Shown here: piece after piece, positions 29,839 through 56,837 of the stretch | Numbering within the stretch: position 1 is the stretch's first letter | Layout: each line of letters opens with the position of its first letter | Assembly (NCBI GenBank): GCA_907165135.1 | Contig: OU015568.1 | Location: 14,705,208 to 14,769,207, forward strand | Direction: 5' to 3' | Source of the DNA: Oikopleura dioica | Taxonomy: Eukaryota; Animalia; Chordata | DNA length: 64,000 bases | Notes under the pieces: generated by a model | The model's database searches: none | The model's input: the letters and a program-made list of their open reading frames with translations, nothing else | Told to the model about the DNA's origin: nothing | Position numbers and translations under genes: made by a program

Positions 29839-31860
29839 ATGGAGATATCTACTCATCCAAAAGAACTCAGCGAAGAGAACGTTGAAAAATGGCTCGAAGA
29901 TTTCTTGCCGAAAATCAAGAGAGAAACAACGAGGAATGATAAGGATCGTCTACTTTTATCAGTCAACGAGATCGATTTCAGAACACAGAAGCATAAAGAA
30001 ATAAAAGATAAGGGAGGCAACTGGACGCATGTTTCTTTCAAGGACAAGTATGCATACATCTTCTACTTAGATAGATATGAAGAGGAAAAAAAGGAAAAAT
30101 TTATCCAAACACAGTTTCAGCGAGATATTATCATTTCAAATCGGGATCTTAGAAGAGTGAAAATCGCACGATCTGAGCTGAACGACGAACGAGGAGCATG
30201 GTTTTTGGAAAAATCGATATCAAAAGACCTGATTTCTTTTGGTGGGGAAGCGATCGTATTGAGCCAAAAAATCGGGGATCTACCAGTTGCGGTTAGAATT
30301 CAGGCAATATATTATGAAAAGATTAATTGATTAAATCTGATTTCAGGTCTATGATCCCGCATTGTTTTGCAATCAACGGTCTTTTTTTCAAAAAATATAC
30401 TATTCTAAAGGTAAATTTCTTGAAAAAAAAAAGAATTTATATATGAGTCAAGATTATCAAATTGCCGAGCATTTGAACCATGAAAAACTAATTCCCTTTC
30501 ATGAAAATGTCATCAAAAACTTTGTGAATATTGAGCTCTACGACGAATCATTTTCATCTTGTCTTGGCTCAATCACAATTATGGAGAAGGGTGATCAATG
30601 TTTGAGACCTTTGCTAAAAGAAAACTCATTGTCGCTAGAAGAGCGAAAAATCATTTCGATCGGAGTTAAAAAAGGGGCCGAATATCTTGCAAAAATTGGC
30701 ATTTATCACCGTGATCTGAAGCCCGAAAACATTATCCTGATAAAAGGGGTAGCTAAAATAATTGATTTTGGTGTTAGTGAAGAGCGATCTGGGCGGTCAA
30801 GTTTCCGAGAAATGGGCTATTCACGAGTTGGACTGAGAATAAGAAGTAGAAAAAACTTCTGTAAGCTTCCAATAAGACTATTCTAACTAAGTTTAATTTA
30901 GATTCTGGATCACCTGGATTTTGTACCTCGGAGCAACTTTTATCTGATTATGATTATGGTTACTTCGATGGTGAGAAAACCTTGATTACACTTATTCTAT
31001 GCGAATGGAAAACAGCTTGGACTTTATTGTATCAACCTATTGAAAGCGATGAAAGTTTGAAGATGTTCAGATCAAGCGATACATACATATTACTAAACGA
31101 CCCCAAGGAAGAAGAAATAATGAAATTAACTGCTATAATTAAAGTTACAGAAGCATCCGGCTATCTTTGCTTGAATGACGGAAACTTGACAAAATCGATT
31201 AATGTGCACTATCTGAAAAATTCCCTCACGAAAACGATGAAAGCAGGTTTTCGGAACTTGACGAAAAATGTTATGAAGCAGAAGGAATCAAATTTATGTG
31301 TGCCAATTGCGGTCACAAGTCTTATTCGATGGGCAATACAAAATGATGTTAAGGACGACCTCTCGCAATATCGTTTGGAAAGGTTGTCATTTGACAAAAT
31401 ATTTGTCATTTTGACAATGGTTCTTTACCCTCGAAGTTTGGCCGGACTAAACTTGAATCCGAATCTGAATGAAACTGATTATCAAAAGAATGAAATTGAA
31501 TTGCTTCTCAAAAGAGTTCAGTATCCAACATTTCTTTCAGATAGCGGATGGGATATTATATCACCGCCATTGTTTTCATGGAAATTTGGGTACAAAAAAA
31601 TTCTTCTTCATGAAAATGGTAGTATGTGGTAATTCGTCGGGGTCGCCCCGACAAATGAAAGATGAAATAACAGTCATTCGTCGGGGTCGATCCCGACACA
31701 TTGAAGATCAAAAATACACCAATTCGTCGGGGTCGAACAATTGAAATACGACGAATATGAGTATTTCTAAGCAGTGATTCGCCGGGTTTTATTTTAAAAA
31801 TCATTGAAAAAGGTCGAAGAGTCCTAGCGCCCTACTATTTGGCAGGAACTTATAGAATCT
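29839..31860 (+). CDS. Divergent protein kinase with an extra C-terminal domain, multi-exon
   Basis: FGGEAIV, PVAVRIQ, YHRDLKPENI, KIIDFG, GSPGFCTSEQ; followed by KQKESNLCVPIAV domain; 3' end uncertain. Confidence 0.7.
31632..31756. repeat. Three ~45-bp units starting ATTCGTCGGGGTCG, with hairpins, inside a kinase intron
   Basis: Units at 31632, 31676, 31722; GTCGGGG-TCG-CCCCGAC stem; outer ends ATTCGTCG..CGACGAAT inverted. Confidence 0.8.
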
Positions 31861-32022: not shown

Positions 32023-32932
32023 AAATTATAGAAAGTACTTTTAGCTAAAATCAGTCTTACTTTGGCAGCAGTAAAGAATATATAACATACCCCCCCCCCA
32101 AGTTTTCGCGCATTCCTCGGTACATTTTCCGTAATTTACTCTTCCTGATTTGTTCAAAACCCCCCAAATTTACGCCGCTTAACTTTTCCGCGCGCCCCGA
32201 AAATTTCTTCTCCTAACTTTTCTGCGTGCGCCCAAATTTACTCTCGCGGCGCTGATTCGCCTCATCGATTAATTTTCTGAGTGCGCAAAAGTCTTGTTTA
32301 GCTCGCTCCGGGCAATGAAAGGATTATCTTTTATAAAAAGCCAGATGCCTTAATAGGTCAGCCCTATTTTATGTTATTTTTGATAAAATTATTGTTTATT
32401 ATTTCAATGAAGTTAATAAATATTTGATAGAACGTTTTTCTAGTGCGAAAGATGAAAACGACATCTGTGGAGCAAAATCCTGACCTCAATATTTTAAGTT
32501 ACTCGAATGGTACGATTTTTATGTGTCCAAGCCACGAAAAAGTTCCAATTCTAGCGCCTCAAGTACCTGAAAACCAACTGTATTCGACTGCTTTTCTGTT
32601 AATACAACTTTGAAAACATGCACTAATAAATAAGTATTACTAGAAATAATGATATTCTGTCATAACTTAGTATTTGTTTGTTGATTGCAATTAACTGAAA
32701 GGAAAATTTTATTAAACAATGATTAAACATACAATGTCGCATTACTTTGAGGAAGTTTATCCATCATATTTACGTATGATTATCTCTTCCGGCTATTTTT
32801 GAACCGGTTGAGGCACACACGGGTGGCGCCCGAGCGCTCCGTCCCCGTCGGGCAATATCTTGCTCTTCAAATTTCGCTATAATTTTTAATAATTTATGAC
32901 TATTTATTTTTAAATTATGGCCTTTGTATTTA

Positions 32933-35900
32933 ATGGCAAGAAACCGGACAAAAAAAACCGGTAAAGAAAAGAAGCCGAGAAAGAAAAGAGGGCCCTACGG
33001 AAGTTCGTCGACTTTGAAAGAGAGAGCGGATGCATTGAAAATCATCGTCGCAAGAAAGGATGCAGGAGAATCGTAAGTTGTTAGATTTTTTAATATTTTC
33101 TTTAATCTTGCACTATTTTTACTAATGAAAGATTATCATAAAATGAAACTAAAGTCGTAATCGTAAGTTACAAATACCTGCCCAATGCCCTTTTAAACAA
33201 TCATCAAAAAATCACAAAAATTCCATCAAGGAAATTAATGGTGATGAGTCGACACCCTTAAATGCCTTCTTCAAAATAATCTTTATCGGTTTTTAACAAA
33301 ATTTATTAACAAAGTTTATAATGGAAACAGTTTCATAATCGATCTTTATATACGGCTTTCCTCGGCGCATGCTTTCCAAATCCGATTCTACAACTTCAAG
33401 GCGTTCTGATTAAGAATTGCGCGAATTTGTTTGATCCTCTGAGGCCGTAATGGTGGGCGCTTACGTGGACGAGTGGTGCTTGAAGGTTGTGTCGGAGGGG
33501 CCCCAGGGATCAAGATCGCCGTTAGAGAAGATCGTGTTCGAAGTAGCTTCCAGGTTGTCGGCCCAGTATTTGATTCTAAACCGATGTTAGGGACGAATAG
33601 TAAAGAAAACAAATATCCGCCGTTTCTATTGCGTGAAAATACACGACTCGCGGATTCTTTTAAAATTTCAAACTTTTACACTTTAGCTCAACATTGCGGA
33701 ATAGCTTCTTTGGATCATAGTCAAGCTCGTCCGCTGGTGGAAGGCTTGTTTTGCTTTTTATACAAGCTCGAAAATAAACAGGGAAAAGATTGTTTCTTTT
33801 AAAACTCTTTCCTGTCAGTTTTGTAGATTGGAAGAAGAGAGCTTAAGGAGGTGCTTTGTTAGAATTTCGTTAAGCTTTTACCAAAGGGGGAGGACTTACG
33901 GCTTATCTTCAAGTTCTTCTTCGAGCCCCTGCTCAAGAATTTGGCGCGGATTAGGTAACGATGATTTGGACTGGGGAATGAAGACTTTGTTTTTCAGGAA
34001 ATCTTGGAATCGCTCAGCGTATAAGCCAGGCCGCACCACTAGAATTGACGTTTTTTGAATTGATTTTTTTTATGAAAAGAAGACCTGAAATCCCGTCGCC
34101 ATTTGTGTAAAGATTTTTGATGAAATATTCCGTTTTCTTGAGAATTTTGTGGCACTGGAGGATGTCGATAATTCCACAATAAATATGAACTTGTGTGCCG
34201 TCGGGAAGTAGTGCAGGCAAGCCCTAGTTCTGGTCGACTTTGTGCTGAGAGAGTTGAAGATTCACTTGCGAGTCAGTGAAGACCTGCTCCATTGGCGACG
34301 AGTATAAGGCAGAGCGCTATAACGAAAATGAGGATGGGTCAATAAGAATGCTCAAATAAGTCCTCCGACTAATAAGGAACCCGGATTTCAAAGCCAAGGC
34401 ATGAAAAAGATTGAAATTCATAGATTAAATACAATCGGGGTTCTGATGGGCTGGAGGCTTTTTTTGAGCATTTTTATTCGTCCAAAAAGAACTGTCTGAA
34501 CGAAGTTTTAGGAAGATAGACTTACTTTGTGAAAGGATTTCTTGTTTCGTTTTCTTTTGACCAGAGAGCTCTTGCCTGAGTTGCCTCTGGAATTACTCGC
34601 GCTCAAGCTCATCGACTCCATACTAGCAATCTCCGTTGTAGAAGTTCTTGAGGATAATTTAGTTTCTCGCCTCGATTAATTGGTTTACCTTAATAGCAGC
34701 TCCAGAAGCAGTTTCGAGCTGGATGTCATTTGTTCCATTGGAAAGTGATTTCTCGTTGATGATGATTTCCATGTCTTCAGAGTCGGTCAACAGCGTCAAG
34801 TCTCATCCAAAAGTTATTAGTGTTGAAAATCTAATGGAGGATAGAGTGAATGTTTATCGGAAGAATTGATCCTACCTTGAACTTGGAGACAGATTTGAAT
34901 TTGTCAACGTGCTCTTTTGGGACTTGGGCGATTTCCAAAAGTCTTCGTAGTCAATCAAGGTACCTCGCTAAAGATTTTCATGCAGTGCTTGTTGTCTGGG
35001 TTGACATGTGGGCGAGGATGTTCATGTCGACGGTTGCGCCAAGATTGTCGATGCTGGAAAGGAAGATTTAAAAGTGACGATTAGTCCTGAGACTTAAACC
35101 AAATTCGCTTATTATTACTTTGCCCTGCTTTATGAGCTCTTCAATCAAACCAGAGTCGTAAAGGGCCATGTAGATGTCACCGTGGGTACCATCCTTGAGG
35201 TTGTAGAGATCCTTGGTGGGGACGGGGAGAAGGGTTTCTTTGTTGATTCGTTGGAAGCTGGTTGAACATTTTGATGTCGACCTGGCAGTTGTTGTTCTTT
35301 CGGAGGATCTTTCGGGTGTCTTCTTCGGTGTTGAAGGAGTTCATCAAAACCAAGGGGACGTTGGTCTCGTAGGTCTTGTTCAAGTGCTCGATTTGCTGAA
35401 CAGTCAAGTCCAAAAAGTTCAATCCAGATCTGACGGAAATGATCGACTTGGGACAAGTGAAGCCCGTGGAAGTACCGCGACCACCATTGAGCTTGATGAC
35501 GACCACTTTCGTTTTTCCAACGATCAGAGCCTTAAAATTACGTTAAGATATGTCCAGATTGGCAATGACCTTGGTATACACAAAGACAAAGTACGATATT
35601 GGTATGATCACAAGGACAAGACATACGCGAGCCTCGAAGTGCATGGAACTGAAGACAATCGACAAGTTTATAACGCTGGAAGAATTGATTTCGAGAAGTA
35701 GTAGCCTAATAACAATTCTCTAATTAATTCTTATAACTTTAGAACCATCCATTTCTCTCTTGCTGACAAAGAGGATGACATCATCGAAGAAGCTGAACTC
35801 ACGAACATTTCCCGCAGAGCCTTAGATGCTGACAATGGAAAAGTTTTACGTCCATTAGACTGTTTCAGAGCTAGAGTAAACAACCATGCAATTCAATATG

Positions 35901-38900
35901 GAAAAACCTGTCCTGAGGAGTACAAAAACAACAGTCGAACATATTCAAGTACTTATTTAGTTGGTAATAAGTGACCTACCTTTTAAATATTAACCAAAAT
36001 TAAGGCAATACCGGAAAAAACCGAAGAGGAAGTACTGTTTCATTAGTCAAACGACTTGGCTTTGGGATGGAAAAACAAACGGAGCAAAAGAAACCAATCG
36101 AATTTTCTAAACTTGCCGGTCATACAGCTGAACTTGTCGATAAAATTAATAATCGTAACCCGTCAGGAACGGCTTCATTTACTCTTATTGTAATGTTAAA
36201 AATACAAAATGAAACCTTTAAAAGATGTTATGAATATAGACGAGAAGAAAGTAGAGCTACAACGTGCACATTCCAAAGGATGGGGCTCCAAGAAGGTGAA
36301 TTGGAATAGAAAGCAGCTCGGAAACAAGCGTATCGGAGCGACGAGCCTTACTGCGATTGCTGCTGATGGTTCAAGAAGATGGTCAACAGGAAATTTTATA
36401 AATATTAATCTTAAAGATAAACCTTTTTAGTAGCTTCGGCAGTTCTAGTTTTCTCCAACCAGTCGTTGAATTCTTTTTTGTCGTCTTCAGCTTTTTGCAT
36501 CGCTCTCTCCGAGTAGTTGTTGATTTTGATCAGATTTTCCTTCTTCTCGGCTGCTTTTAACGACTTTTTCCATTCATACCGGATCATCTAAAATTTTTCT
36601 TTTATAAAATTTATAAAAAATATCAAGTAATCGTGGCGAATATCCCGAAGGAGCTCACTAAAGTCGCCAAAAAACAGCTGATCTACAAGACGGAGAATTT
36701 TTCATATTATTATATGAATATCGTTACGATGACGTGTGATGGCCCGAAGGATCTACATCTATACACAAGTAGCAAGGCTTCGATGACCAATGTGATTTGG
36801 ACGCACATGATCACGAGATGGAATGCTGAACTGGTGGAAGATAATCAGCACATTTTACTTTTATTGGGTTCTTTATCTTATTAAAAAAATAATGAATTAT
36901 TAAAACTATTTAAGACAACGCGTCCCAGCACGGCTTCTTGAAAGGAATGGACGCTGAGCATTCCAACATCGAAATGGCCTTTCTGCTGGCTAATTCCACT
37001 GATCTCTGTCAGGTAATTTTTCCGAAGATGAGTGGTAAGAGATTGAGTGAGCTTTGGTACTGACGTGAATGGAGCTAAATCTAAATGACAAATTGCCTAA
37101 TTTATGAAATGAACAATTTTCTAACTCGAAATTCAAAACTTCAATTTTAATTAATGGCTTCGAAAAATAGAAATTGGAAAAACCGGAGCTGAGATAAAAT
37201 GAGACTAAAACTGGAGCCAGCCGAAGGTACTGTATTCGAAGATAGGCCGGAAAAAAGGAAAATAGGTTTTGGAAAACAACAAGACGGATATTCATAAAGA
37301 GACGAGTAAATCTGTAAATGTTTGGTTATTTTTGTATGTATTAATTGTATCGTTCCTTTTTCAGCGATCGTGAGTTAGGCTTTATGGGGAATAATGAAGA
37401 TAGTGATGGGTTCAATAAATGTCTTAATTTGTCGATAAACAAGATTCAAGCGCACAAAGGAACAAAGGATTTTGTACAAAAATGCAAAGAGAGTAAGCTT
37501 TTAGTTGATAAAAGTTGCAAACAAATTGAAATTGAAAATTGGTAAAATAAGAAAAAGAATCTTCGCTTGAAAATGGAGCTGAATTCGAAGGTTTCCGAAG
37601 AATGGTCGTGCGGGCGGAGCAGCGGGTGGTCATCTCGAGCTTTTTTGAGAACGAGAGTGTTAACTTGTTGCAGCTTCGAGGATCTGGCAGTCGGAGCAGA
37701 CGAACTTCGGGTCGTCGCGGACGTCTTTCGGGTTAACGTTGAGGCAGAACATGTGGTACCATTTTGCGCAGCGCTCGAAATAGACCCGCTCGAATTTGTT
37801 GCCGTCTGGACGCTTGCATTGGCCTAAAAATGCGTGAAAACACAAAAACTTTATCCATCTTACCAGCAACGCAAGGTCCATCATCGTCAACATCCTCGTC
37901 GTCGTCCTCGTTTTCACTCGTTTCTTGTTGAAATTGAGTCCGAGCTCCTTTGTTTTTCTTCCGCGGATTCTGCGAGCGTCGTGGGAGATCGGAATCCTTA
38001 TCGCGTCGTTTACGATTCGGCGCCTTGTTTTAGAGATAAGAACATTTCAAATTTTCAAAAAAAAAACGCTTACGTCGCAGCTCATGGTGTAAGTTCCAGA
38101 AGTAGCATTTGGGAAAAGGAAGGAGTTGAACTAGAACTGAATCGCTGCAGCATCTGACTGGCCAGAAGAGCCGAACTGGAAGTCAACGATTGCATTGGGG
38201 CAGACGTTGAGGACTTCGAGGGTCGAACTTTTTCGCCTTCAATAGTGTTCAATTAAACCATATTTCATAGAAACTTACGATTATGACTAGGAAGTTGAGG
38301 GCGTAAAATGCATCCAGCAAATAGTCCAGCTAGGAATTCACTTGTACATCAATTGATGCTACCATGCTTGAGAACCTCTTTCAGGAACATTATCTAACCA
38401 AAGTTGTTCGTTGAATGATGAGATTTGGAGACTTACTAAATATTGAAAGTTGTTTTGCGATCTGAGGTCGAGCTTTTCAACGAGATTTTTACAAAGCCTC
38501 ACGTGGTCCACGATGACAAGGCAAATTTCAAAATGCGAACATAAGATTATTGGGAAGGGATTCGAATTGTGGAAGAGCAACAATACTTCTGCCACGGAAG
38601 CAACTGAACCTGGAAGTGTCTCGATCTAAAAGTAGTTTTCTGTAAATCCATGGTTGACGATGTGATTCAGTAAAACGTAGAAAGCAGGTTGAAATTCTGC
38701 TCCCTCATCGAAGCATCGTTTGAGGCATTCTTTTCTGAGAAAAAATGTTGAGGGTCTCGAATTTATCTTGAAAGTACCTAATTGATTGAGAACTAGAGAA
38801 GTCGCAGGATATAAAGGAAGCTTTTTTGAAGAATGAATGTGTAAGAGCAATGAATGGCATTCCAAACGCCGAGTATGTTCAGTTTCCGGAAAGAGTTATG

Positions 38901-41300
38901 TAATGATCAGGCCCGTTTTTCAACTTGAGGATGAGAATGAGATCGTCGACGGGATTCACGAACTTGTCTCCTTGCTTCACACCGAAGTTGAACTTTGAGA
39001 CGACTTCTTTATTGATGTTGAGATCGAATCCTATTGTATAAATTGAGGCATCTCCACTATCTGGCTGTAAGATTACCTGAAAATAACTTCAAATCATGGA
39101 TTTTCATTGCAATTTACCTTATTTGGATCGATCCACAAGCCGATGTTTGAATTAAAAGCTTCGTAGATGTCCTTGTCCGGCGAGAACACTTTCGAATCGA
39201 TGATCTGAAACTGCGCCAGCGTCTTTCCCGTATTCTGCGATCGCTCGTTCCAAAAATTTCAGCTTTCCAAAGTCGATTGCTTTGCTTGAAACAGCCTTTG
39301 CGGAATAAGCTCAATCTCGTGCTTGTCTAGCCAACTGGTAACTTCTTTGTACACGGAGTAGTAGATTTCTTTGTTGATCCTCTCGGTTCGGGCGATGAAA
39401 CTGGCAAGGATTGGTTTGTGGTCAGAAATGGTTATTGAAGGATGTGAAGAATAAGACAGACATTCTACGGATTGTTGTCATTGGCACATATTGATCGCTG
39501 GTTTCTGGGAAATCATCTTGAGTAGTTGAGCTCTCGAATTTTCTTCGTTGATTTTTTCTTTCTAAATAAATTTAAGCCGGCGGATCAGGGATATCACGCA
39601 ACTCTCGGCAAGTTGATGCGATCATGGGTGACAGAGCAGTACGCGAAAAATGATGAACCACCGAATCGAGCTGACGCAGTCCTCAAAGTCAATGAAGCGG
39701 TCTACTGTATTCACCCAGATTGCATCATTGGTTCTTATGCAAGAAGGAAAGTTAATTTTGCATTCAAAAGAATGTGAGAGCTATAACTTTTAGAAACAGT
39801 ACCTAGTGCATTTCTCCTGATCAGTTTTCTTTCGAAAGTTCTTTGTAAGAGCCGGCAGAGTTTGAACGCATATTCTTCTTGATACAGGCAGCACTCGTTC
39901 AATTTGATCCTAAAAATGAAATTAAAAGTAATAAAAAGTGAAATTAATGATAAAAGCGGACTTCTTCACGCTGATCTCGTCAACGAGGAGAAAAACCACG
40001 TCAATCGAGAACTTCCAAAGGCCCCAGAAGAAGAAAAGGCGCGAAAAAAACGAAGAGAAGGAAAAGAATCACTCTACAAGCTCTACAGCAAAGAAGTTTT
40101 GCAAGACTTTCTTTATAAGGACCCGATTATCGAAAGCGATCGCTTTTCTTATAAAACGCGAATAGAACTGAAGGTAATTAATTTGAGAGATATTTTCTGA
40201 TTTTAACTTTTTTTAGGAACCCGACATTGAATTGGAAGAGAGAGTGAAGAAGATTATTCAACTGAAAAACGCAGCAAAAGCTCGAAAATGCGCCGAAACG
40301 AAGAAAAAGAGGAAAATGGAAAGAAGTCAAACCAAGAAAAACCCGATCCCCGATGAGCCTGAAAAAGCACCAGAGGAGAAGGAAGAAGAAGTCGAATCCG
40401 AAGCCGAGGAACCAGAAAGAAAGATCCCAAGGGAGGAGCCACGGAACCGATATGTCCTGGGTCAATTGCTCACTCCAGCGGATTTCGAGAGCATCAGAGG
40501 CAATCGATGGTTTTTCAGCACAGCAGTCGACGCTTTTTTACCGTGTTCTTGAGCATGAACATCCTGAAATTGCGGCAATATCCGTGAATGTATCTGTAAG
40601 TCTATAAAATTTTTTAAAGAATAACTATTTTCTAAGATTTCTTTGGCCAGTCAATCACCGGAAATGGCGAAGAATTTTTTCAGTGGAAGATTGTTCGAGA
40701 CAAAGGAAAGAATCCTGATTCCAATCCATCAATCGTAAGTTAAATAAATATCTATTTTTATGCACTAATGGACTTCTTCCTAATTAAATTTCATTCTAGT
40801 GATCCTATTGGTCATTATTCTCTACTTCAACTCGATCTTGCTCTACAGGAATGTACCTACTTTGATAGCCTTGCAAATCTCTATGGAACTTCTCAAGAAA
40901 AATCCGATGCTAAAAAAAAGAAAAAAGAAATTTTGGACTTGCTTCTACCTTTCATTGGACAACGATTTGACGAACAATTTGCCCGTGGATTCATCAAAAA
41001 CACATTTCTGGACAAGAACATTGCGAGCCCGTCAACTGGAAAATGGCGATCGAAATGCGCAGAGCTACCGACAATGCAATTGGATGGACACTCCTGTGGT
41101 CCGTGGATTTGTCACTTTGCGGATTGTCTAGGAAAGCGATTTATAATTTACCTTGATTTCTTGTCGAATTCTTTTTTGATGAAAGCAGCAATGTTCTTTC
41201 GTTCCCGGAAAGTGCGTTTTTGGCCTTCGAGAGCTTGCTGAGAGTACTGATCCGTGAAGGTGTAGAAGCTGGATGTGTGGAACTCGCGGAAGATGAACGT
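32933..41300 (+). CDS. Intron-rich pogo (DDE_1) transposase fused to Ulp1/C48 SUMO-protease domain; near intact
   Basis: Exons 32933-33072, 35548-35697, 35743-35948, 36005-36166, 36225-36389, 36628-36867, 36915-37012, 39577-39746, 39957-40173, 40217-40589, 40637-40733, 40800-~41130 join in frame (one T-run slip near 40540): KRGPY..GES|YVQIGNDLGIHKDKVRYW (HTH), NIDEK, TSLTAIAADGS, KASMT..ILLLL|DNASQH, FLLANSTDLCQ|PADQG, SYAR|SGLL, PIHQS|DPIGHYSLL, FDSL, QLDGHSCG. Confidence 0.8.
33340..33760 (-). pseudogene. DPP7: Captured 3' fragment of DPP7/PRCP (peptidase S28)
   Basis: YWADNLEATSNTIFSNGDLDPW and SAHHYGLRGSN match S28 SNIIFSNG.LDPW..AHHLDLR; stops and frameshifts; DPP7 vs PRCP not resolved. 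Confidence 0.75.
33896..34625 (-). pseudogene. PIP5K1: Captured 3' fragment of type I PIP 5-kinase
   Basis: RSALYSSPME, GLPALLPDGTQVHIYCGIIDILQCHKILKKTE, then exon VRPGLYAERFQDFL (cf. LYIGIIDILQSY..HRPGFYAERF); internal TAG stop; introns retained. Confidence 0.85.
34625..35525 (-). pseudogene. UGP2: Captured central fragment of UDP-glucose pyrophosphorylase
   Basis: [47 protein letters not shown]..HGDIY (frameshift), IDNLGATVD, LEIAQVPKEHVDKFKSVSKFK, FNTNN, QLETASGAAIK; introns retained. Confidence 0.93.
36423..36587 (-). pseudogene. Orphan 165-nt antisense exon inside transposase intron 5
   Basis: TTTTAG|..|GTTTAT splice sites on minus strand; open 55-codon frame MIRYEWKKSLKAAEKKENLIKINNYSERAMQKAEDDKKEFNDWLEKTRTAEATKK. 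Confidence 0.5.
37640..38240 (-). pseudogene. Fragment ending in a PHD finger (resembles the KDM5 C-terminal PHD type)
   Basis: NKAPNRKRRDK..EDDDEDVDDDGPCVA|GQCKRPDGNKFERVYFERCAKWYHMFCLNV..FVCSDC; one Cys ligand replaced by F. Confidence 0.65.
38280..39480 (-). pseudogene. OCRL: Captured 3' half of OCRL/INPP5B (5-phosphatase end, ASH, RhoGAP-like)
   Basis: YSSHPSITISDHKP, LILILKLKNGPDHYITLSGN*TYSAFG, IETLPGSVASVAEVLLLF, LAGLFAGCILRP; stops and frameshifts; introns retained. Confidence 0.88.
39803..39909 (-). pseudogene. Orphan 107-nt antisense exon inside transposase intron 8
   Basis: TTTTAG|GATCAAATT..GCACTAG|GTACTG on minus strand; two open frames; unidentified. Confidence 0.35.
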
Positions 41301-41733
41301 CTTTTTTTTACAAATTTGCCGTCTAGATCTTTCAGTCAGATTAGACTTACTAAGCCAGTCTTTAATTGATTCAAAAATGAGCAGTTCTTGCTTTTATACC
41401 TCGCTGAATTGATAGCCCCGTTTTCTCGGAGATAGCGAGTGATGTTGTGCGAAGTCGCGTTTTGGGAGCTCTTCTTCAAGTGAATAAAGGGATTTGACAG
41501 GAAAAAGCTTAGAATGTTGATGTCATGCCACTAAAAAGGGTAAACAGACTAATAGATTAAGAGAAATGGCTGGAATATTTTTAGACAGTTGTTTGAGTTT
41601 TCAGAATATCACGCGGAAACATTCCTACAGAAAGACAAATCAATAACGAGCGAAATAAATATAGTGGTCGATGATTAACGGAGAATATCTATTGCGAGAC
41701 AAAGGTGCGGCAGAACGAGTCGTAAATAAAATA

Positions 41734-42121
41734 GGTGGTGGTCTAAACTTTGAAGTTCGTATGTGCGATAAGAACTTCGGGTGGCCTAAACTTTGATCGT
41801 TCCCATGTGTGGCTCTTTGAGAAAGTGGCCTAAACTTTGAATTTCCCCGGAGGCGCTTCTGCCATCGGTGACTAGAGCTCTGCCTGCTAAGGCCACTACG
41901 CTTTAATCAGACCAATTAGGTTTACGGTTTTCATTCAGGGTGATGACACATGGAACTAGTCAGAGCGCCTCAGGGGAAATTCAAAGTTTAGACCACTTTC
42001 ACACATGGAAAGAATCAAAGATTAGGCCACTTTCTCATAGAATCACACATGGGAAGAATCAAAGTTTAGGCCACACAAAGTTCTTATCGCACGTAAGAAC
42101 TTCAAAGTTTAGACCACCACC
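41734..42121. mobile_element. 388-bp MITE nested in the large element
   Basis: TA|GGTGGTGGTCTAAACTTTGAAGTTC .. GAACTTCAAAGTTTAGACCACCACC|TA; subterminal GTGG(T/C)CTAAACTTTGA repeats on both arms. Confidence 0.88.
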
Positions 42122-42169
42122 TATTTTAGTACAAGCAGCAGTGTTTTAAACAAGACTGAGTTTACATGA

Positions 42170-42735
42170 AGTATCCGGCATTTTTGTATAAATGATTGCT
42201 GAAGATGTGAAGAGCATTGCCCCATTCCTTATCCTCTGCAATCTTCCGCGTTTCGAGGGAATTCTCGCGCTTTGGAAACGAGTTTCGCCAGTTGTTTGCT
42301 TTTCGATGTTGCCACTCGACATGGGCGGGATGTCGATAGAAGACGGAGTAGTTTTTGCTCTTCAAAAGATTTGGGACGCAGAACCACCTCGCTCTATAAA
42401 CCAAAAGTAAAAGAAGACAAACGGAAATTTTAACTTACTGTTGCGGGTGGCGTAGAGGTACTTGAAGATCGAAGCACGTCAATATTGATCGCATTCATCT
42501 TGCGCGAAATATTCTCGACTGACATTGAACGCTTCGCGACTGGGAGAACGTCTCGCCGTGTGTTCAAGTTTCTACGAAGGATTAACAATGAAGGAATTGC
42601 AAAAATTGTCATTACTTTTTGGCGAATCTTTTGGGACGCTGATATTTCCGGGAATAGCTTGGTAAGCTCCAGACGCAGTGGACAATGCGCTCATCCATCG
42701 ACGTTGCTTCTCGTAGCTTTCCGCTGCAAGCAGGA
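42170..42735 (-). pseudogene. Captured fragment with a PH-domain-like C-terminal helix and Ser-rich region
   Basis: VLLAAESYEKQRRWMSALSTASG fits the PH terminal helix pattern (AES..E...W..AL); gene not identified. Confidence 0.45.
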
Positions 42736-43110
42736 CATTGTCAATGATTTTATACATTCGTAGTCGATAAATTCCATAGTTTAATTGTTAGATTAGCGGG
42801 ACATGAAGCTATCAATTAATTATTTAGCAAATGATCCTAGTTGGCGATTTTTACCGAGTTATTTTCCCGTGGAATCAAATGCGCAGTCTTGAACGGTGTC
42901 TGTTTGTCCTTTTAGCGTCCTCTCAAATTCGCCACTTTTAAATTCCTAAATCTAGATCGCTTTAAAATGGAGTAAAAGAGAGAAGTCGTTACTTGATTTG
43001 CGAGTCTTCGAAAGCAGTGACGAGTAGACTGAATTGAGGATGGAAAATGGTTCTGCTGAACAAGGTAGAATTCGTGGTGCGGCTGTCTGTATTCTTTTGT
43101 CGGCACAATA
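42735..43110 (-). pseudogene. PAFAH1B1: Captured fragment of LIS1 WD40 repeats
   Basis: RTIFHPQFSLLVTAFEDSQIK | [30 protein letters not shown] | ASCPANLTIKLW vs LIS1 [55 protein letters not shown]. Confidence 0.88.
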
Positions 43111-43977
43111 AAGTGAAGTGGAATCTGCTCTCTGTTCGTGTCCATTATTTCCTGAAACGGTTAATTGTTAAAAGGATAGTAAGCATCTGTTCACTTTTTT
43201 TGATTAATGAACAGAGTATTCTTTTAAAATCGCTAATTAGCTTCCAAAAGGATCTCTCCAGCCGACAGCACAGAGATATGCCAGAGTGGAGAAAAACGAT
43301 TGAAGAAAGGGTAAGAATCAATAATATTTACGCTATTCTGAATAACTTATTCAATTTCTTTTAAAGATTCTCAAATACTGCCGTTGATTTACCTGCTAAG
43401 AAAACTCGCGATTTTATGTCGATTCACGCCGCAAACTCGATGTACAGCTATTGATGACGTCATTACTCCACCACCATAAACCACTGAAAATCATAAATTT
43501 TACTGTCATTCTTATCGCTTCAATAAAACAGACAATATTTAAAAATTAAAAAATAACAATGTTTAAAAAGGTAAAGGTGTATCAAAGGTCAGTGTCAGAA
43601 TATATTCCAAAATGTAATTTCTCTAACTAAGTTCTGGACTTAAACTTCTACAATTGATCTTCCTCTGGAAAAAAAAAGACTGAAATCCCTTGGCTTAATT
43701 TGGCGCTATGATTGGATAACGCGCCCGTTAATGAATCATTAGCGTTGACGCGCATTTCAGCGGCGCGCGAGTAAATTTTGGCGCACGCGGAAAAGTTAGG
43801 AAAGAAATTTGGAAACGCGGGGAACGCGAGGAAGCGTAAATTTTGGGTGTTTTAGAAAAGTTAGGAAACGGAAACTTGGGCGAAATACCACGAATTGCGC
43901 GGAAATTTAGGGGGGGGGTATGTTAGTTAATAAAAATTTCGATATTTTTCGAAAAGGGATTTTCTGAAAATCATTAC

Positions 43978-46305
43978 CTAAGAGTGATGCGAAGGTATTA
44001 GCCATAGCTAGGGAAACTCGATGAAAATTGAGCTTTTTTCTGGGCTTAGTATACCGGGAGTAGAATACCTTTTTAGAAAGCTCAGAAGCTGTGGATCATT
44101 TTGACTATTGACAGTTTTGGGTTTAGATCATGCCTTGGGGGCATTTGGAGCCTCTAAAGTGCTGAAATTCGAGTACTTTCTGAATAGGGGATGAAAAAAG
44201 TGCCCGTTGGGACCTTTCAGAGAAGGCAACCTATCTAGGATTGTAGAGCAGACTCTGACGGTTCAGAATATGTGTTAAAAACCACCGGGACCCCCCCATT
44301 CCAGAGGCTCTAGAAGCCCTTGAAGTTGAGTAAGTCACGCGAAAATCGGTACTTTTTTCATAATAAGTGCCAAATTTTTATTTTCTCTATCTGCAATTGA
44401 TTTAAAAACGTTTAAATGGACTTAATGATGTTCAAAAATGCATTACTGGTCGTTCTAGCTCACTTTGGGAAGCTTTTTAAACAATTTTATTTTTTCTTAT
44501 AATTTGACACCAAGTGACCTCAAATGACCCCGAATGCATTTTTGAACATCATAAAGTCCATTTTAACGTTTTTAAATCAATTGCAGATAGAGAAAATAAA
44601 AATATGGCACTTATTATGAAGAAAGTACCGATTTTCGCTTGACTTCCTCAACTTCAAGGGCTTCTAGAGCCTCTGGAATCGGGGGGTCCCGGTGGTTTTC
44701 TACACATATTCTGAACCGTCAGAGCCTGTTCTACAATCCTAGATAGGTTGCCTTTTCTGAAAGGTCCCAACGGGCACTTTTTTCATCCCCTATTCAGAAA
44801 GTACCCGAATCTTAGCACTTTAGAGGCTCCAAATGCCCCCAGGGCATGACCTCAACCCCTACCTATCAATAGTCAAAATGATCCCCAGCTTCTGAGCTTT
44901 CTTAAAAGGTATTATACTCCCGGTTTACTTACCCCAGAAAAAAGCTCAATTTTCATCGAGTTTCCCTAGCCATAGCGAAGGTTAATCCGGAAAGACCTAA
45001 ATCGAATGTCAACGAAAATCAACTCGAAGCCAGAAGTCCTACCCGGCGCAATTTCCACGTGATTCGCCTTAAAACCGCTGCAAGTGACTCCATTGAACGA
45101 CAACGAAAAAGAAAGGAAGAAAACTATCATCGGTGCATTGCAGCCAACATGACCAGCAAGAGCGATCGAACTGCCAGCCACGCAAAGCCCACTCGTAGAC
45201 ATTATTTTTCTAACCGTTGTAGTCTTCATTTGCCGCTGGCCGACAAGGAAATCGGACACTATTCCGGAAAGAAGCGTCATGACGGGATTCAAAAGCGCTG
45301 GAATGGCAGCTAGAAACATTTTATACAAATCTGTTTAGTATTTATTCACTTACTTAGAATCGCAGCAGATTCGATGTTAAAATGAATTTGCTCGTGCAAG
45401 TAACTCGGCATGTAGCTTGACATGACAAAAATTCCATAATTTCCGGCGCCATGAGCGAGAATAATTGCCCAAACTGGAACGCTCGTCATAATACTTGCCC
45501 ACGGAATTGTTAATCGTTCATTTTTCGTTCCATTTCTTTCGGAAGTTATCAGAGTGAGCTCTTCTTGTGAGATTTTTTTATGCTCTGCTGGCGTGTCGAA
45601 GCAAAAGTACCCGAGAGCTGCTGCAAATAACATCGAAACAGCACCTGTAAAGTAGAAAATGGATTGCCATCCGAGTTCTTTCGCCAGCCAGCCATCAATT
45701 GGGTAGGTCACGGCCATTCCGATTCCCGCTCCCGCAAATTGAATCGACACAAGTCGGCTAAGCTCCTTTGAAGGCGCCCAGCTCCCCCACAGACCCATGA
45801 AAACAGGGTAGATGCAGCCCTGTAAGAAACCGATGAGCACTCGAACGAAGATGAAAAATTTGACTGCAAGCGCGTCTTCCAGCTGGAGAATGACACAGGG
45901 AATAAGAGAGGTCAAGAATCCAGTGGCGAAAAATGATATCGTCAGTGTTTTAACATGTCCGTATTTTTGGCCCGCCCAGGCGCCTGGAATCTGCATAATC
46001 GTGTAACCGATGTAGTACGCGCCAAGAATCTGGCCTTTTGATTTTTCATCCCAGGCGTATCGGACTTGCTCTTCTTCGTTCTCGTGAACATCTATTGATA
46101 TATTTCCGCTTATTGGTTTATATGGACAAACTGTCTTTTCTTCGATCGTAGAAGAGTTTAGAAAATTTGATCTCTCTTGAACATGGTTTATCTCGACCAT
46201 CTGAACGATCGCAATCGAGACATTTCCTCGAAGAGAATAGACATTGAAGGTTGAGAAGAATGCGAAGATTGCTTTTGAAGACTTTTTTGACTGACAACTT
46301 ATCAA
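43978..46305 (-). pseudogene. SLC17 (sialin/VGLUT-like) MFS anion transporter, interrupted near its 3' end
   Basis: IFAFFSTFNVYSLRGNVSIAIV, WDEKSKGQILGAYYIGY, RVLIGFLQGCIYP, WAPSKELSRL, ANHVEIAP; exon GLSGLTFAM|ANTFASL split by the hAT element; last TM helices not found. Confidence 0.8.
44009..44968. mobile_element. 960-bp foldback non-autonomous hAT-type element
   Basis: Termini TAGGGAAACTCG..CGAGTTTCCCTA; 8-bp TSD GCCATAGC at 44001-44008 and 44969-44976; ~436-bp inverted arms around an 88-bp spacer. Confidence 0.92.
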
Positions 46306-51433: not shown

Positions 51434-53164
51434 TTACACAAGTGGTTGAAGATGTTTATTAATCGCTTTGTCAAGTCCGCGTACTCGCCTGCAGAACATG
51501 CAAGTGAAGAGGGTCAGGGTTAAGAAAGTAAAAAGAATAAGGATACCGTTGGAGATTAGAGATATGGATTTTGATCGAGTAAAGTTGTCGTCCACCACAT
51601 CCTCCAAGTCATCGAGACGGTCCTCGACGTCATCAGCGAAGTCGTTGTGGTCAAGGTCAACGGCGCTGAAGGTGAAGTTGTTCCTTGCACCTCTAAAGTC
51701 GATCTTGGTGTTGTCAGACGTCACAATGCTTGTTTTTGGGATCTTGATGAGCTGCTGCGATCCGGAACAAAAGACTTCCTGGTCCAAGCTTGTTTCAGGG
51801 AAATATTTGAAGCCAGTGAAAGTATCGTGGGCCGATCCGATGTCGGACAAGACTGTTCTGTTTCTCAGGATTGCTTTCTCTGCCGCGTAAACGATGAGTC
51901 CATTCTTGTCGAAGGCGAATGAGCAGGTTGCTTTTGTAGCAGTTCTCCGGATGTTGCAATTCTGGACATCGCGGAGACAGGAAGCGCTTGAGATTGCTGA
52001 GTGCCGGCAGATCATGTTTTTGCGAGCGCTTAAACAGCTAAAGCGGTCAACTTCGTAAAACTCGTTCTGGATCAATGTTGCAAACGGGGCAATGTCCGGG
52101 GCGATCAGGAAGTTCTCGTCAGTTGAAGGGTCCATTGTGATGATTCCAAAGGAGTTCGCATGATACAGTCGTGTTGGCGCGGACTCGATGACTGGGAAAG
52201 AGAGCTGGATGTGGATGTCGAGAGAGTTTTCAGTGATGTTCAGCCCGTAGAGTTCAGGCTTTAATTCCTGTGGGAATTCTCTCAGCATGTTCTCACAGTA
52301 TCGCTCGCACATTTCCGGTTCCAGAGCAATGCATGATCCCCAACACGCAGACGTAAAGAGTCTGTTCCATTCCACACGGCTCGGAATCAATCCTTGCTCC
52401 AGACTTGCGACTTGATAATCCATCTCCTCCATGAATTTGTCCACGGTGATCCGGGCCCAGTCCTCGAATCGAGCTTCCAACATCCGGTTATTGAGTCGGC
52501 AAATATCGTTGTCGATTCTCGCAAGCTGGTCCTGTGTTGCATTGAGATTGACTTGGACGGCGCTCTGGAGCTTCGCGAAGTTTCGTGTGAGTTTATCCAA
52601 GTTCTTTCCTTGATGAAGAGATACAGATCGAAGCTTGGCGATGTCGTTCGTATTTTTCAATTTAAGACCCAGGTTGGCTGCTGCCAGAACAAGAGCAGGA
52701 GCGCCGGCGAATCTTTTTCCCAGATGCGATTCGTGAGATCTTGCATATGCTGCTTGTGCTTTTAGCGACTGCAGTTCCAATCGAAATTTCCGTTCAATCA
52801 CATCCAGTAGGGCAAAAGTTCGCTTATCGGCGAGGTTTTCCGTGCATTCCCTCCTGTCCCAACGGTTGGCTTTGTAGTGTTTGATGCAGCGGTCGACGTC
52901 GCATTGTCCGGCGTCGACTCCAGGTTCCATTCTCAGGACGTCCAGCGGAAGGGGCCGACTGATGATGATATGATGATGGCTGCGTTGTCGCGACAGGAAG
53001 AGTCTGCCAGTCTCCTCGAGGAGAATTCCCCGCTCAGCACAGTAGATTCGGCAGAGCATCGGACCAGCGCGACGGCAAGGGTGAAGAAAAGCATTTCGTA
53101 AAGGTGCACTGTCTGAAAATCGGCGAGTTAACGTTGAGTCACGGCAAAACATCTGTATGTACAT
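51434..53164 (-). CDS. env: Env-like class I fusion glycoprotein, 576 aa
   Basis: Basic site and hydrophobic peptide GKR|FAGAPALVLAAANLG, heptad region LDKLTRNFAKLQSAVQVNL, Cys-rich ectodomain, TM ILILFTFLTLTLFTCMF. Confidence 0.85.
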   Translation of the reverse strand: MYIQMFCRDSTLTRRFSDSAPLRNAFLHPCRRAGPMLCRIYCAERGILLEETGRLFLSRQRSHHHIIISRPLPLDVLRMEPGVDAGQCDVDRCIKHYKANRWDRRECTENLADKRTFALLDVIERKFRLELQSLKAQAAYARSHESHLGKRFAGAPALVLAAANLGLKLKNTNDIAKLRSVSLHQGKNLDKLTRNFAKLQSAVQVNLNATQDQLARIDNDICRLNNRMLEARFEDWARITVDKFMEEMDYQVASLEQGLIPSRVEWNRLFTSACWGSCIALEPEMCERYCENMLREFPQELKPELYGLNITENSLDIHIQLSFPVIESAPTRLYHANSFGIITMDPSTDENFLIAPDIAPFATLIQNEFYEVDRFSCLSARKNMICRHSAISSASCLRDVQNCNIRRTATKATCSFAFDKNGLIVYAAEKAILRNRTVLSDIGSAHDTFTGFKYFPETSLDQEVFCSGSQQLIKIPKTSIVTSDNTKIDFRGARNNFTFSAVDLDHNDFADDVEDRLDDLEDVVDDNFTRSKSISLISNGILILFTFLTLTLFTCMFCRRVRGLDKAINKHLQPLV

Positions 53165-53174
53165 GGAGAATAAA

Positions 53175-56100
53175 TCATTTGGAACTGGGCAAGGGCAAAG
53201 GTCTCAGAAAACGGATGTTCCTTTTCAGAACGCTCCCACTTGATTCGTCTCTGATCTCATAGACATCAGGGCTGAGCTTCTTTGTGATGACGGCGGTGTT
53301 GCGGAAGGAGACATGTAACTTCTTGCACTTTCCGATCCGCATGGGTGCCCAATAGGCGACTCGCTGATCCACTTCGAGCGAGGTTCCATGAAACGGCTTG
53401 ACGTGATGTGCAGCTTGTTCTTGGTACTTTCCGGCGAGAAACTGGCCAACTTGACGCAGCCATCCAGACATGTAGCCACTCCAGAGAAAGGGGTCGTCGT
53501 TGTTGTCGGGCTCAGGCCGGAGGTGAAAGAGCGGGAGTTCCATAGGGCGCCCTGTGAGTGCTTCAGAGGGACTTAACCCGCTCAGTGCTTCCGTTGGCGT
53601 ATTGTTGATTGTGTGAAGGACAAAGCAGACTTGGCGGCTCCAGTCATCGCGGCTGACATTTGCCAGTCGAGCCTTCAATCCCAAGGATCTAAATTTTCTT
53701 TCGATGCGGTTGCTCTGAGCGTGAAAAGGGCTGATGTAGGCGACGCGGATGTTGAAGGCTTCCATGACGCGATCGAAAACGGCATTTCGAAACTCTTTTC
53801 CATTGTCGCAACGGAGCATGGCCCCTTGCGCGTTGTTGCTCAGCAAAACGTCGGCCAACGCAAATGCCACCGTCTCAGCCTTCTTATCCGGTAGGCATCT
53901 TCCCACAAGGTAGCGCGTGCAATCGTCCATAACTCCCAAGAAGAACCGATTTCCAAGAATATCTACTGAGCCGAAATCGGACAAATCGACATACAATTTC
54001 TGCCAAGGCTTTGTGCTTACTTCCGGCCTAGGCGGGTGGAGAGCCTTAAGTTTTGGCCGTGGCTTGGTGCGCCAACAGGTGTGGCAATCGTTGCAGACTT
54101 CATTGCATACCCGTTGAAGGCCATTGATGAAGAACTTCCGTTTCAGGATCCTCTGAAGGGCAAGTGTTCCAGGATGACCCATTTTGCAGTGGACGAAGGA
54201 GGCAATCTCGATGTGAAGCTGCTCAGGAAGGGTGATGATGTCCTTGTCGCGTGACAGAACCCATACACCCTGCTCATCAGTGGCAATTTCTCCTCTTTTC
54301 TGCATTCTTATCAGCACTGGATCGATTTCTTGGAGTCTGATGATGTCGCAGGCTCTGTAGGGCACGTCGCCGCTGATCATAACGACCTTTTGACCGGCTT
54401 CTTCCTTTGCTTTTTCTTCCTCTTTCGCCAATCGTTTCGCCCGACGCGTCTGCATCGCAAGAATTTCGAAGATTTCTGGTCCCTTTGGTCGCAGCTCGAT
54501 CTTGTTGAGAAATCCCCGATCGATGTGTCCATCGGATTCGTCATGGTCGTCGTCGTTGGCGATTTCGTATGCGCGCGATAAGGCGTCGCTAGAGACGATA
54601 ACAGGCTCGTTATTGGGAACATACGTTATTCCCTTAACCCTGAACCTACTCAGCCTTGCGTACAGGTTCGTTACACGCACTGGCACATCTTGCCGGAGGC
54701 GACGTTCATTCAGAACTAACTGCAGCGACTTGTGGTCAGTCAGCGCGTAGACTTGGCTCATGTAAATTTCATACTCGAAATTTTCCAAAGAGCAGACCAA
54801 TCCCAGTAGTTCGAGATATCGGGACGGTAGCTTCCGCTCGCCATCAGTCAGCGCGCGCGAATAGAAACCCAACGGAAAAAGCCGCCCATTTTCGTCCCTC
54901 TGGTACAGACAAGCGCCGATTCCAGTGGTGCTGGCATCAGTTGCGATCACGAGGTCCATTGACTCGTCGCGGTGCTTGAAGGAGACAACTTGAGCGAGTG
55001 CTTCTTTGTAGCTGGAGAAGGCTTCTTCATGCTGGGATTTCCACACGAATTTTTCTTTTGAAGGCGCAGCTAACTTGAACAACGGAGACAGCAAGCGGTG
55101 GCCATCCTTGACAAAGTGGGAGTAAAAGTTGCAAAGCCCAAGAAAGCGCCTGAGAAGCTTTCGGTTCCCTGGGCGTGGAAAACGTCGGATTGGGTCAAGC
55201 TTGTCATCCAAAGGCCGTATTCCGTCTTGACTTACTTGAAATCCCAGGTACTGGAAGTCTTTCACGCCAAAGTGGCTTTTGGAGATTTTAAGCAGAAGAC
55301 CGTTCTCGAGCATTATTTTCAAAAACTCGTCGACTGCCGAAAGATGCTCCTTGAAGTCCCCATGAACCAATATGATATCATCCATCAATACCGACAGTCC
55401 AGGAATGTGCGAACAGAGTCGGTCGATCACGTGAGCAAAGACGGAGGGCGAATTCATCAGACCAAAGGCCATTCGTCGGCAGATGTACTGTCGGCCAAGG
55501 AAAGAGAACGCACACTTGTGCATGTCCTGTGGGGCCGTTCGGATCTGTGAAAAGGCGGAGGCGATATCGACGGAAGTCACATAGAGCTTGCCTTTCGTGT
55601 TTGAAATGTCACGTGACAATTTGGACATCAATTCTTGGAGGGAGGGGATCGGCCAACGCGTGGGGATCGTCAACTGGTTGAGCCGCCTTGCGTCTAATAC
55701 AGGGCGGACGTCGTCTTTGCCCTTCTTCACAAAAAAGAGAGGGAGGTTAAAGTCGCTCGCTCCCCTCTTGACGACGCCCGCCTTGCACCAATTTTCGATG
55801 ACCACTGTAGCCTTCTCTCTGCATCCAGGGCGCACAGGAATAGGCTTCTCGTAAACTCGGGCTGTCTCATCTTTCAGTCGGATTCTGAAGGCCAGAGACT
55901 TCGCCATGCCGAGATCCTGCGGTCCAGTCGAGAAAACCTTCCAATACTTGTCCAGCTTCTCCGTCATTGCTTTCTTCTCTTCGAACGTGAGGTCAGGGCC
56001 GATTTCCACTTCCTTGTACTTATAGCGGTCTGGACCCTTAAGTCGAATTTCGCGATTTCGTTGATGCTCCTCCCACTCACGGTCGAATTCACTGCTTGAA

Positions 56101-56837
56101 ACACTGACCAGCTCATTGAACTCAAACTGCCCCCTTTTCGTTCTTTTCATGAGGCTAGCGGTCGCCACCTGCGCGCCCTCTGGAATGGTAAGCGCCACGT
56201 TCGTTGAGTTGTATACGAGGATTGTTTGGCATTTCGCAGCACTGTAAATCGCTTCACAAGTCTCGATACCTTGTTCCTTGCAGAATCCATCTGGTGAAGG
56301 CTCAACCAGGATCACATCCTCGAGCTCGTCTTCACCGACAGGAACTTTCACTCTGATTGGCATTAAGGACTCAGGACCAATGGTAGCCGCGACCAAATTG
56401 TTTAGTGCAAGGTGTCGGCCAGTTTGAACCATATCGTAGGTCTCTCCGTCAATCTGGATCGTTTCTGTGTCTCGGTTGATCCTCAATTCTTTCCAGCTGT
56501 TCATTCCAAGGATACATTCGTGGTTGAGGCCAGGGACGATGAGGAAACTCTGGTAACGAACTCTTCCGTTCAGGCACAATGGTAGAATGATCTTTTCCTT
56601 GCAGCGCATCTTGTCAGAATTCGCAACGACAATGCTCGCTTCCACAGGCTCACGGCGCGCGTTAGGGAATTTAGCAGCGAGTTCTTGGGCCAAAATCGAG
56701 CAGTTGGCTCCCGAATCAACGAGAGTAAGAAGTTCAGTGTCGAGAATTTGTAGTCTGATTTTCGGAAGCAGGGAAGGCAGCGAGATTTCATGACAGGCGA
56801 GTTTTTGGCTTTCTGAGCCTGGAGAATCCCCGCCTAG
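53175..56837 (-). CDS. pol: Pol (PR-RT-RNaseH-IN), in frame with gag after a single UGA
   Basis: LVDSGA protease, VDIASAF and LMDD in RT, ATDAS RNase H, H..GHPG..C..C and VD..DNG..E integrase motifs. Confidence 0.95.
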   Translation of the reverse strand, partial: LGGDSPGSESQKLACHEISLPSLLPKIRLQILDTELLTLVDSGANCSILAQELAAKFPNARREPVEASIVVANSDKMRCKEKIILPLCLNGRVRYQSFLIVPGLNHECILGMNSWKELRINRDTETIQIDGETYDMVQTGRHLALNNLVAATIGPESLMPIRVKVPVGEDELEDVILVEPSPDGFCKEQGIETCEAIYSAAKCQTILVYNSTNVALTIPEGAQVATASLMKRTKRGQFEFNELVSVSSSEFDREWEEHQRNREIRLKGPDRYKYKEVEIGPDLTFEEKKAMTEKLDKYWKVFSTGPQDLGMAKSLAFRIRLKDETARVYEKPIPVRPGCREKATVVIENWCKAGVVKRGASDFNLPLFFVKKGKDDVRPVLDARRLNQLTIPTRWPIPSLQELMSKLSRDISNTKGKLYVTSVDIASAFSQIRTAPQDMHKCAFSFLGRQYICRRMAFGLMNSPSVFAHVIDRLCSHIPGLSVLMDDIILVHGDFKEHLSAVDEFLKIMLENGLLLKISKSHFGVKDFQYLGFQVSQDGIRPLDDKLDPIRRFPRPGNRKLLRRFLGLCNFYSHFVKDGHRLLSPLFKLAAPSKEKFVWKSQHEEAFSSYKEALAQVVSFKHRDESMDLVIATDASTTGIGACLYQRDENGRLFPLGFYSRALTDGERKLPSRYLELLGLVCSLENFEYEIYMSQVYALTDHKSLQLVLNERRLRQDVPVRVTNLYARLSRFRVKGITYVPNNEPVIVSSDALSRAYEIANDDDHDESDGHIDRGFLNKIELRPKGPEIFEILAMQTRRAKRLAKEEEKAKEEAGQKVVMISGDVPYRACDIIRLQEIDPVLIRMQKRGEIATDEQGVWVLSRDKDIITLPEQLHIEIASFVHCKMGHPGTLALQRILKRKFFINGLQRVCNEVCNDCHTCWRTKPRPKLKALHPPRPEVSTKPWQKLYVDLSDFGSVDILGNRFFLGVMDDCTRYLVGRCLPDKKAETVAFALADVLLSNNAQGAMLRCDNGKEFRNAVFDRVMEAFNIRVAYISPFHAQSNRIERKFRSLGLKARLANVSRDDWSRQVCFVLHTINNTPTEALSGLSPSEALTGRPMELPLFHLRPEPDNNDDPFLWSGYMSGWLRQVGQFLAGKYQEQAAHHVKPFHGTSLEVDQRVAYWAPMRIGKCKKLHVSFRNTAVITKKLSPDVYEIRDESSGSVLKRNIRFLRPLPLPSSK

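Follow-up and report, generated by a model that had tools for sequence, protein, structure and literature searches.

The analysed stretch of Oikopleura dioica DNA (contig OU015568.1 of assembly GCA_907165135.1, positions 14,705,208 to 14,769,207), which is 64,000 nucleotides long and is called the window below, contains a transposon-like element of 11,839 bp (32085–43923). The element encloses a plus-strand gene for a transposase of the pogo type and carries, on the opposite strand, pieces of host genes, referred to here as cargo. It is bounded by terminal inverted repeats (TIRs), the left one at 32085–32275 (plus strand) and the right one at 43733–43923 (minus strand), and the dinucleotide TA, the target-site duplication, is located directly outside both ends (32083–32084 and 43924–43925). 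A preliminary description of this DNA, made from the letters alone, had claimed TIRs of ~190 bp with TA flanks, and both features were found: the two repeats can be aligned over ~190 nt with 81% identity. Their first 14 terminal bases are identical (ACATACCCCCCCCC), and this terminal motif occurs twice in the window, both times at an element tip, where 0 occurrences are expected. Each TIR also contains a motif, CCCAA(A/G)TTTNC, repeated three to four times as CCCAA(A/G)TTT(A/T/C)C; counted from the tip, the copies are found at corresponding distances, 16, 82, and 150 nt in the left repeat and 16, 47, 81, and 146 nt in the right one. The motifs resemble the repeated binding sites in long-ended Tc1-type elements and, by this analogy, are candidate sites here; owing to such internal repetition, the 81% identity of the TIRs need not reflect their age.

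The gene enclosed by the TIRs has 12 exons and at least 11 introns. Exon 1 (32933–33072) contains the ATG, a basic stretch, and the first half of a helix-turn-helix (HTH) domain, and it is followed by intron 1 of 2475 nt (33073–35547, GTAAGT...TTAAG). Exons 2–5, 35548–36389 overall (exon 2, 35548–35697; exon 3, 35743–35963; exon 4, 36005–36154 or –36166; exon 5, 36225–36368 or –36389), encode the second half of the HTH, a linker, and the NIDEK motif. Intron 5 (36369–36627) measures 259 nt if its donor is GT, and 238 nt if the donor is GA. The core of the DDE_1 domain with the LLLLDNASQH motif is encoded by exons 6 and 7 (36628–36867 and 36915–37012; together 36628–37012), and intron 7 of 2564 nt (37013–39576, GTAATT...TTAAG) is located between the second and the third catalytic Asp. 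Introns 1 and 7 both contain antisense cargo, and their coordinates are exactly as given in the preliminary description. Exons 8–12, all within 39577–41241 (exon 8, 39577–39773; exon 9, 39888–40173; exon 10, 40217–40595; exon 11, 40637–40734; exon 12, 40800 to ~41240), encode the PADQG end of DDE_1, a K/E-rich linker, and an Ulp1/C48 core with its His, Asp, Gln, and Cys.

When only GT–AG introns are allowed and the extra T of the window at position 40534 is dropped, the spliced frame is open for 847 codons; with the three GA–AG introns of the preliminary description (58, 238, and 210 nt; at 36167, 36390, and 39747), it is open for 858 codons. The claimed in-frame joining of exons holds with either set of introns, whereas the sequence of the window itself is frameshifted at 40534. 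A canonical intron of 50 nt upstream of NIDEK was discarded, as it breaks the frame. The tiny introns and the GA–AG options are compatible with O. dioica. The frameshift was compared with contigs derived from the reads of a DNA run, X1, which may be the very sample behind the assembly. The window has one T more than the X1 contig in the T run 40529–40534, and the shorter version restores the frame. The extra T is likely a homopolymer error that makes the Ulp1 region look frameshifted. The X1 contigs also span the borders between exon 7 and intron 7 and between intron 7 and exon 8; therefore, these borders are not assembly artefacts.

The DDE_1 domain was assigned by Pfam searches with spliced segments of 81–155 residues taken from the gene model. 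Single exons gave no match for the DDE part because they are too short for Pfam. The spliced exons 6-7-8 match DDE_1 (PF03184) with an E-value of 1.9e-10 and 41 bits (cut-off 22 bits), and positions 49–157 of the profile are covered unbroken across a 47-nt intron and the 2564-nt intron 7. The part upstream, spliced as in the preliminary description, matches profile positions 2–88 (E 0.003). In a language-model search, exon 6 was placed with DDE_1 clusters (0.95), and exon 8 gave a weak Tc1-type lead. The Asp of LDNAS and the Asp of PADQG are separated by 34 residues in the spliced model, within the 29–56 residues of pogo elements between the last two Asp of the DDD triad. The classification as a pogo-type element with TIRs and TA flanks is supported. 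The first catalytic Asp, in NIDEK, is assigned by its motif only: the DDE_1 match begins downstream, at RRWST, and in the GT-only gene model the stretch with this Asp had no Pfam match. The HTH encoded across the exon 1/2 junction was matched weakly (HTH_23, 0.023; CENP-B_N, 0.052). The second, CENP-B-like DNA-binding domain that had been proposed was not detected: exon 3 had no Pfam match, and the language-model search with this exon was uninformative. At the C-terminus, the Ulp1/C48 core matches PF02902 (E 7.8e-6, 26.3 bits, cut-off 20.7; profile 96–182), the match extends across a 65-nt intron (profile 74–119), and the motifs GHYSLL, YFDSL, and QLDGHSCGPW can be read in the gene model; the N-terminal third of the Ulp1 domain was not detected by Pfam. 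Among the domains claimed earlier, DDE_1 and Ulp1 are thus recovered clearly, the HTH weakly, and the CENP-B-like domain not at all. According to the gene model, the DDE and Ulp1 parts would belong to one protein, which hangs on an ambiguous junction.

Five fragments of host genes were confirmed by Pfam within the element. All five are located on the minus strand, antisense to the transposase gene, and none of them in an exon. Intron 1 contains the C-terminal part of a PIP5K kinase domain, in two pieces lying in different frames (33899–34223), and a fragment of UDP-glucose pyrophosphorylase (UDPGP; 34662–35542, Pfam profile 52–318). Intron 7 contains a fragment of a PHD-finger gene (37663–38046) and an OCRL/INPP5B-like fragment with the end of the 5-phosphatase, the ASH domain, and a RhoGAP-like part (38060–39478). 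A dynein light chain LC8-like fragment (41151–41393), matched weakly by Pfam (E 0.008), is found in the 3′ arm of the element. Ten plus-strand open reading frames (ORFs) in the same cargo stretches had no Pfam match. About nine antisense fragments had been proposed, with cargo in each of four enlarged introns. Four of the fragments, however, are without a match: Pfam recognized neither the DPP7-, LIS1-, and PH-like pieces nor any cargo in the 114–210-nt intron, the fourth of those named, and the proposal holds for introns 1 and 7. The bias of orientation is statistically modest, since the fragments represent 3–5 independent events (p 0.03–0.125). The large introns were found to have no repeats in common, and no repeats were found at the boundaries of the cargo blocks.

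The earlier statement that the cargo keeps its introns and is decayed is confirmed by the UDPGP and OCRL-like fragments. The best UDPGP piece has an E-value of 1.5e-38, and two further pieces were matched. Mapped to human UGP2, the pieces correspond to residues 209–265, 265–286, and 321–345, and they are interrupted by ~51 nt and by a 45-nt GT–AG stretch, i.e., by two retained short introns. A 46-nt intron considered for this fragment was rejected after the UGP2 mapping, as its supposed acceptor tract is coding (IFLSS); the corrected interruption is the one of ~51 nt, the AG of which is apparently changed. Two intermediate UDPGP pieces are located in the other two frames, and the fragment contains at least five frameshifts. 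In the OCRL-like fragment, the phosphatase end and the ASH domain were identified by Pfam, and the RhoGAP-like part was read by eye. Its frame is shifted at least twice and is interrupted by a TGA, as judged in part by comparison with the human protein, and it retains introns, one of 41 nt near 39100 and one with its GT at 38432. Its borders at 38060 and 39478 coincide with the loose ends of contigs from other loci. The introns of the transposase gene mostly end in TTAAG, TTTAG, or CTAAG; the host introns kept by the cargo have TTTTCAG or CCATTAG at their ends.

The origin of the cargo is also indicated by RNA data, namely three bulk oligo-dT runs with ~18 million records. Reads cover the element in short islands only and run on into unlike sequence. 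They are messages of the parent genes, and expressed parents therefore exist. More than 1000 parental mRNA reads per run cover a 39-nt island at 41156–41194, and the peptides encoded by the flanks of these reads, ALEKYNIEK and GPTWHCIVG, are characteristic of dynein light chain LC8. Another parental message leaves the cargo at 38433 and goes on to its next exon, whereas the cargo has a minus-strand GT there; thus, an intron was included in the copy. A few parental-type RNA reads, with two mismatches, were also found within intron 5 (~36430–36484). Additional diverged contigs from other loci match pieces of the cargo.

The cargo and the gene differ in their decay. In ~2.1 kb of cargo, the frame is broken or stopped at least 8 times, whereas the 2.54 kb of transposase coding sequence has 0 breaks (1 in the version of the window), where ~10 are expected at the cargo rate. 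The Poisson probabilities of this contrast are 6e-5 (0 breaks) and 7e-4 (1 break), on the assumption that the cargo decayed after entry. The contrast may be read as selection on the transposase while the element carried its cargo, a reading that fails if the cargo was copied from pseudogenes already decayed. If the cargo decayed inside the element and the frame stayed open, then the frame would have been kept by selection, and the cargo-laden introns would thus have been spliced out. This gives indirect support to the earlier suggestion that the element tolerates its cargo because the transposase message can still be spliced.

The structure itself is real and out of the ordinary, and the best-supported explanation, which we consider probable, though far from certain, is a low-copy pogo DNA transposon carrying host cargo antisense in its introns and 3′ arm, with the transposase frame kept. 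The analysis establishes the anatomy, the continuity of DDE_1 across the large intron, the identity, strand, retained introns, and decay of the cargo, and the existence of expressed parents. The gene is interrupted only within introns and after its coding part, by DNA-level host fragments that retain their introns. It is proposed that the element took up copies of parts of several unrelated host genes as genomic DNA, introns included, and that the likely route was template-switching break repair. O. dioica is reported to have lost classical end joining and to rely on microhomology-mediated repair (PMC11067885, citing Deng 2018), which would be a plausible source of filler DNA for the captures. 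In a lineage that keeps moving, only insertions sparing the transposase message would survive. Such insertions would lie in introns or downstream of the gene and would have their host splice signals in the wrong orientation. Such a filter would leave cargo antisense in introns 1 and 7, possibly in intron 5, and in the 3′ arm. The cargo would then decay freely, and the transposase frame would stay open. The element may still move, or may have moved recently.

Several observations weigh against this explanation. At three junctions of the gene model there are alternative donors, GT or GA, at 36155/36167, 36369/36390, and 39747/39774, the sequence of the window is itself frameshifted at 40534, and the decay contrast depends on the timing of cargo decay, as mentioned above. 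The TIRs are just 81% identical, and nothing related to the element was found elsewhere in the window. In run X1, no second copy of the transposase with at least 92% identity was found over 35500–41400, the contigs forming one path. One or two X1 contigs from another locus agree with the element over the last part of intron 7 and some of exon 8/intron 8 (39495–39843) and then continue with unlike sequence; they may stem from a partial second copy. The three RNA runs contain at most 1 read located wholly on the element and no splice joint, and none of ~18 listed RNA contig sets contains the element. The spliced joints 33072/35548 and 37012/39577, which had been suggested as a check, are accordingly missing from these runs. 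The same data bear on two further claims of the preliminary description: no element transcript was found to support the proposed pre-mRNA antisense to numerous messages of the host, and potential autonomy contrasts with essentially no RNA reads and a single copy at this identity. Searches of protein collections were negative as well. When 1.84 billion representative proteins were searched with the Ulp1 exon by phmmer, no relative was revealed (a single hit was dismissed as a repetitive junk protein), and exon 6 gave no candidate in a word-based search for homologues; therefore, no substitution-rate comparison was possible. Exact-product look-ups of three ORFs of the window returned no record.

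These results could also be explained by a dead, single-copy relic into which the fragments were pasted later as filler, the non-coding position of the fragments being due to chance and the open frame to luck or youth. The single copy at 92% identity or more, the missing transcripts, and the TIR identity of 81% all agree with such a relic. However, chance does not easily account for 0–1 breaks in 2.54 kb of coding sequence next to at least 8 in ~2.1 kb of cargo at the same locus, for the avoidance of exons by five of five confirmed fragments, or for the intact 14 terminal bases and motif positions in both TIRs, and we regard the relic as unlikely. The single copy and the intact long frame, together with the extra Ulp1 domain, would also be expected of a domesticated, pogo-derived host gene, in which selection at the level of the host keeps the frame and the long introns collect debris; POGK, POGZ, and CENPB are domesticated pogo genes with extra domains (PMC7386202). 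Here, however, both TIRs and the TA duplication are kept, the feature that separates transposons from domesticated genes in the same survey (PMC7386202), and the gene is essentially not expressed in the three RNA runs. Domestication is, in our view, very unlikely.

Another debatable issue is whether the cargo blocks were captured by the element at all, as they might be nested insertions of other fragment-carrying elements, Helitron-like or of another Pack type. The blocks are chimeras of internal pieces of several genes in one orientation, as in Helitron cargo, and one true nested foldback is present at 41727–42128. However, neither inverted nor direct repeats bound the blocks, and what the contigs from other loci share with them is limited to short pieces of exon size, with ends at the fragment borders 38060 and 39478, instead of covering multi-kb blocks. 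This makes nested insertion quite improbable. A pogo transposon with antisense cargo in its introns and 3′ arm remains the explanation that we favour.

Cut-and-paste transposons that capture gene fragments are familiar from plants, and animal cases have been catalogued; nearly always, the elements described have lost their transposase. An intact transposase beside decayed cargo suggests that capture need not cost autonomy when the cargo is intronic and in a harmless orientation. If further copies confirm this, they would provide a simple rule for the location of cargo in autonomous elements, a way for exons to be shuffled within a highly compact animal genome, and a case for testing the link between unusual break repair and the capture of filler DNA. 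A protein combining pogo and Ulp1 parts would add one more superfamily to those with this protease domain. A much broader proposal can also be formulated, in which unrelated transposase-encoding transposons of this compact genome use their own introns as cargo bays. The pieces would enter by error-prone break repair, persist only when antisense and without disturbing splicing, and travel with a still competent element that shuffles exons and makes pre-mRNA antisense to many host genes. In this general form, the proposal is doubtful.

The window contains other features in and around the element. The nested foldback in the 3′ arm (41727–42128) has 114-nt arms, 91% alike, with 44-nt sub-repeats GTGG(T/C)CTAAACTTTGA... 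A larger foldback (43998–44979) follows 75 nt beyond the right end of the element and consists of two 468-nt arms, 92% complementary, with 46 nt between them. Just left of the element, a 45-nt tandem repeat is present in 2.3 copies (31631–31736), preceded by a 216-codon ORF (30982–31632) without a Pfam match. Farther to the right, on the minus strand, three consecutive long ORFs (576, 1172, and 526 codons; 51434–58418) occupy a GC-richer stretch (0.50–0.515), probably a retrotransposon. An Rfam search of the window gave no match.

Among known systems, the pogo superfamily (Tigger/pogoR) shares with this element the TA duplication, the TIRs, DDE_1, and perhaps the N-terminal HTH, which was weakly detected here, and the spacing of 34 residues between the two Asp falls in the Tigger range of 29–36 (PMC7386202). 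The elements in this survey are 1.2–5.2 kb long, and the word "protease" is absent from it (PMC7386202). The O. dioica element differs from them in its size of 11.8 kb, in at least 11 introns, in the in-frame C-terminal Ulp1/C48 core, and in the host cargo; its 11,839 bp exceed the pogo range because of the cargo and the introns. With regard to the cargo, it is similar to Pack-TIR elements, which have been catalogued in animals with a proposed template-switch/gap-filling origin (PMC8277862), and to the Pack-MULE and Pack-CACTA elements of plants. All of them are bounded by TIRs and hold parts of several unrelated host genes that were captured as DNA and have kept their introns, and the origin proposed for Pack-TIRs fits the chimeric blocks observed here. 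However, Pack elements are defined as non-autonomous, the cargo replacing the transposase, whereas in this element the frame is intact and the cargo lies inside the introns of the transposase. Other comparable elements are Turmoil-1 of Caenorhabditis elegans, which keeps its transposase and has captured intron-containing pieces in its ends (PMC2572040), and the grapevine CACTA, PIF, and hAT elements with transposases, which carry transduplicated exon–intron pieces, in one case antisense and downstream of the transposase (PMC2528002). ULP domains also recur in MULE and CACTA elements (PMC2528002). Turmoil-1 and the grapevine elements belong to other superfamilies, mostly of plants; like the O. 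dioica element, they still encode a transposase beside captured exon-plus-intron pieces, but their cargo occupies the terminal repeats or flanks the gene, and that of the O. dioica element is located within the transposase introns.

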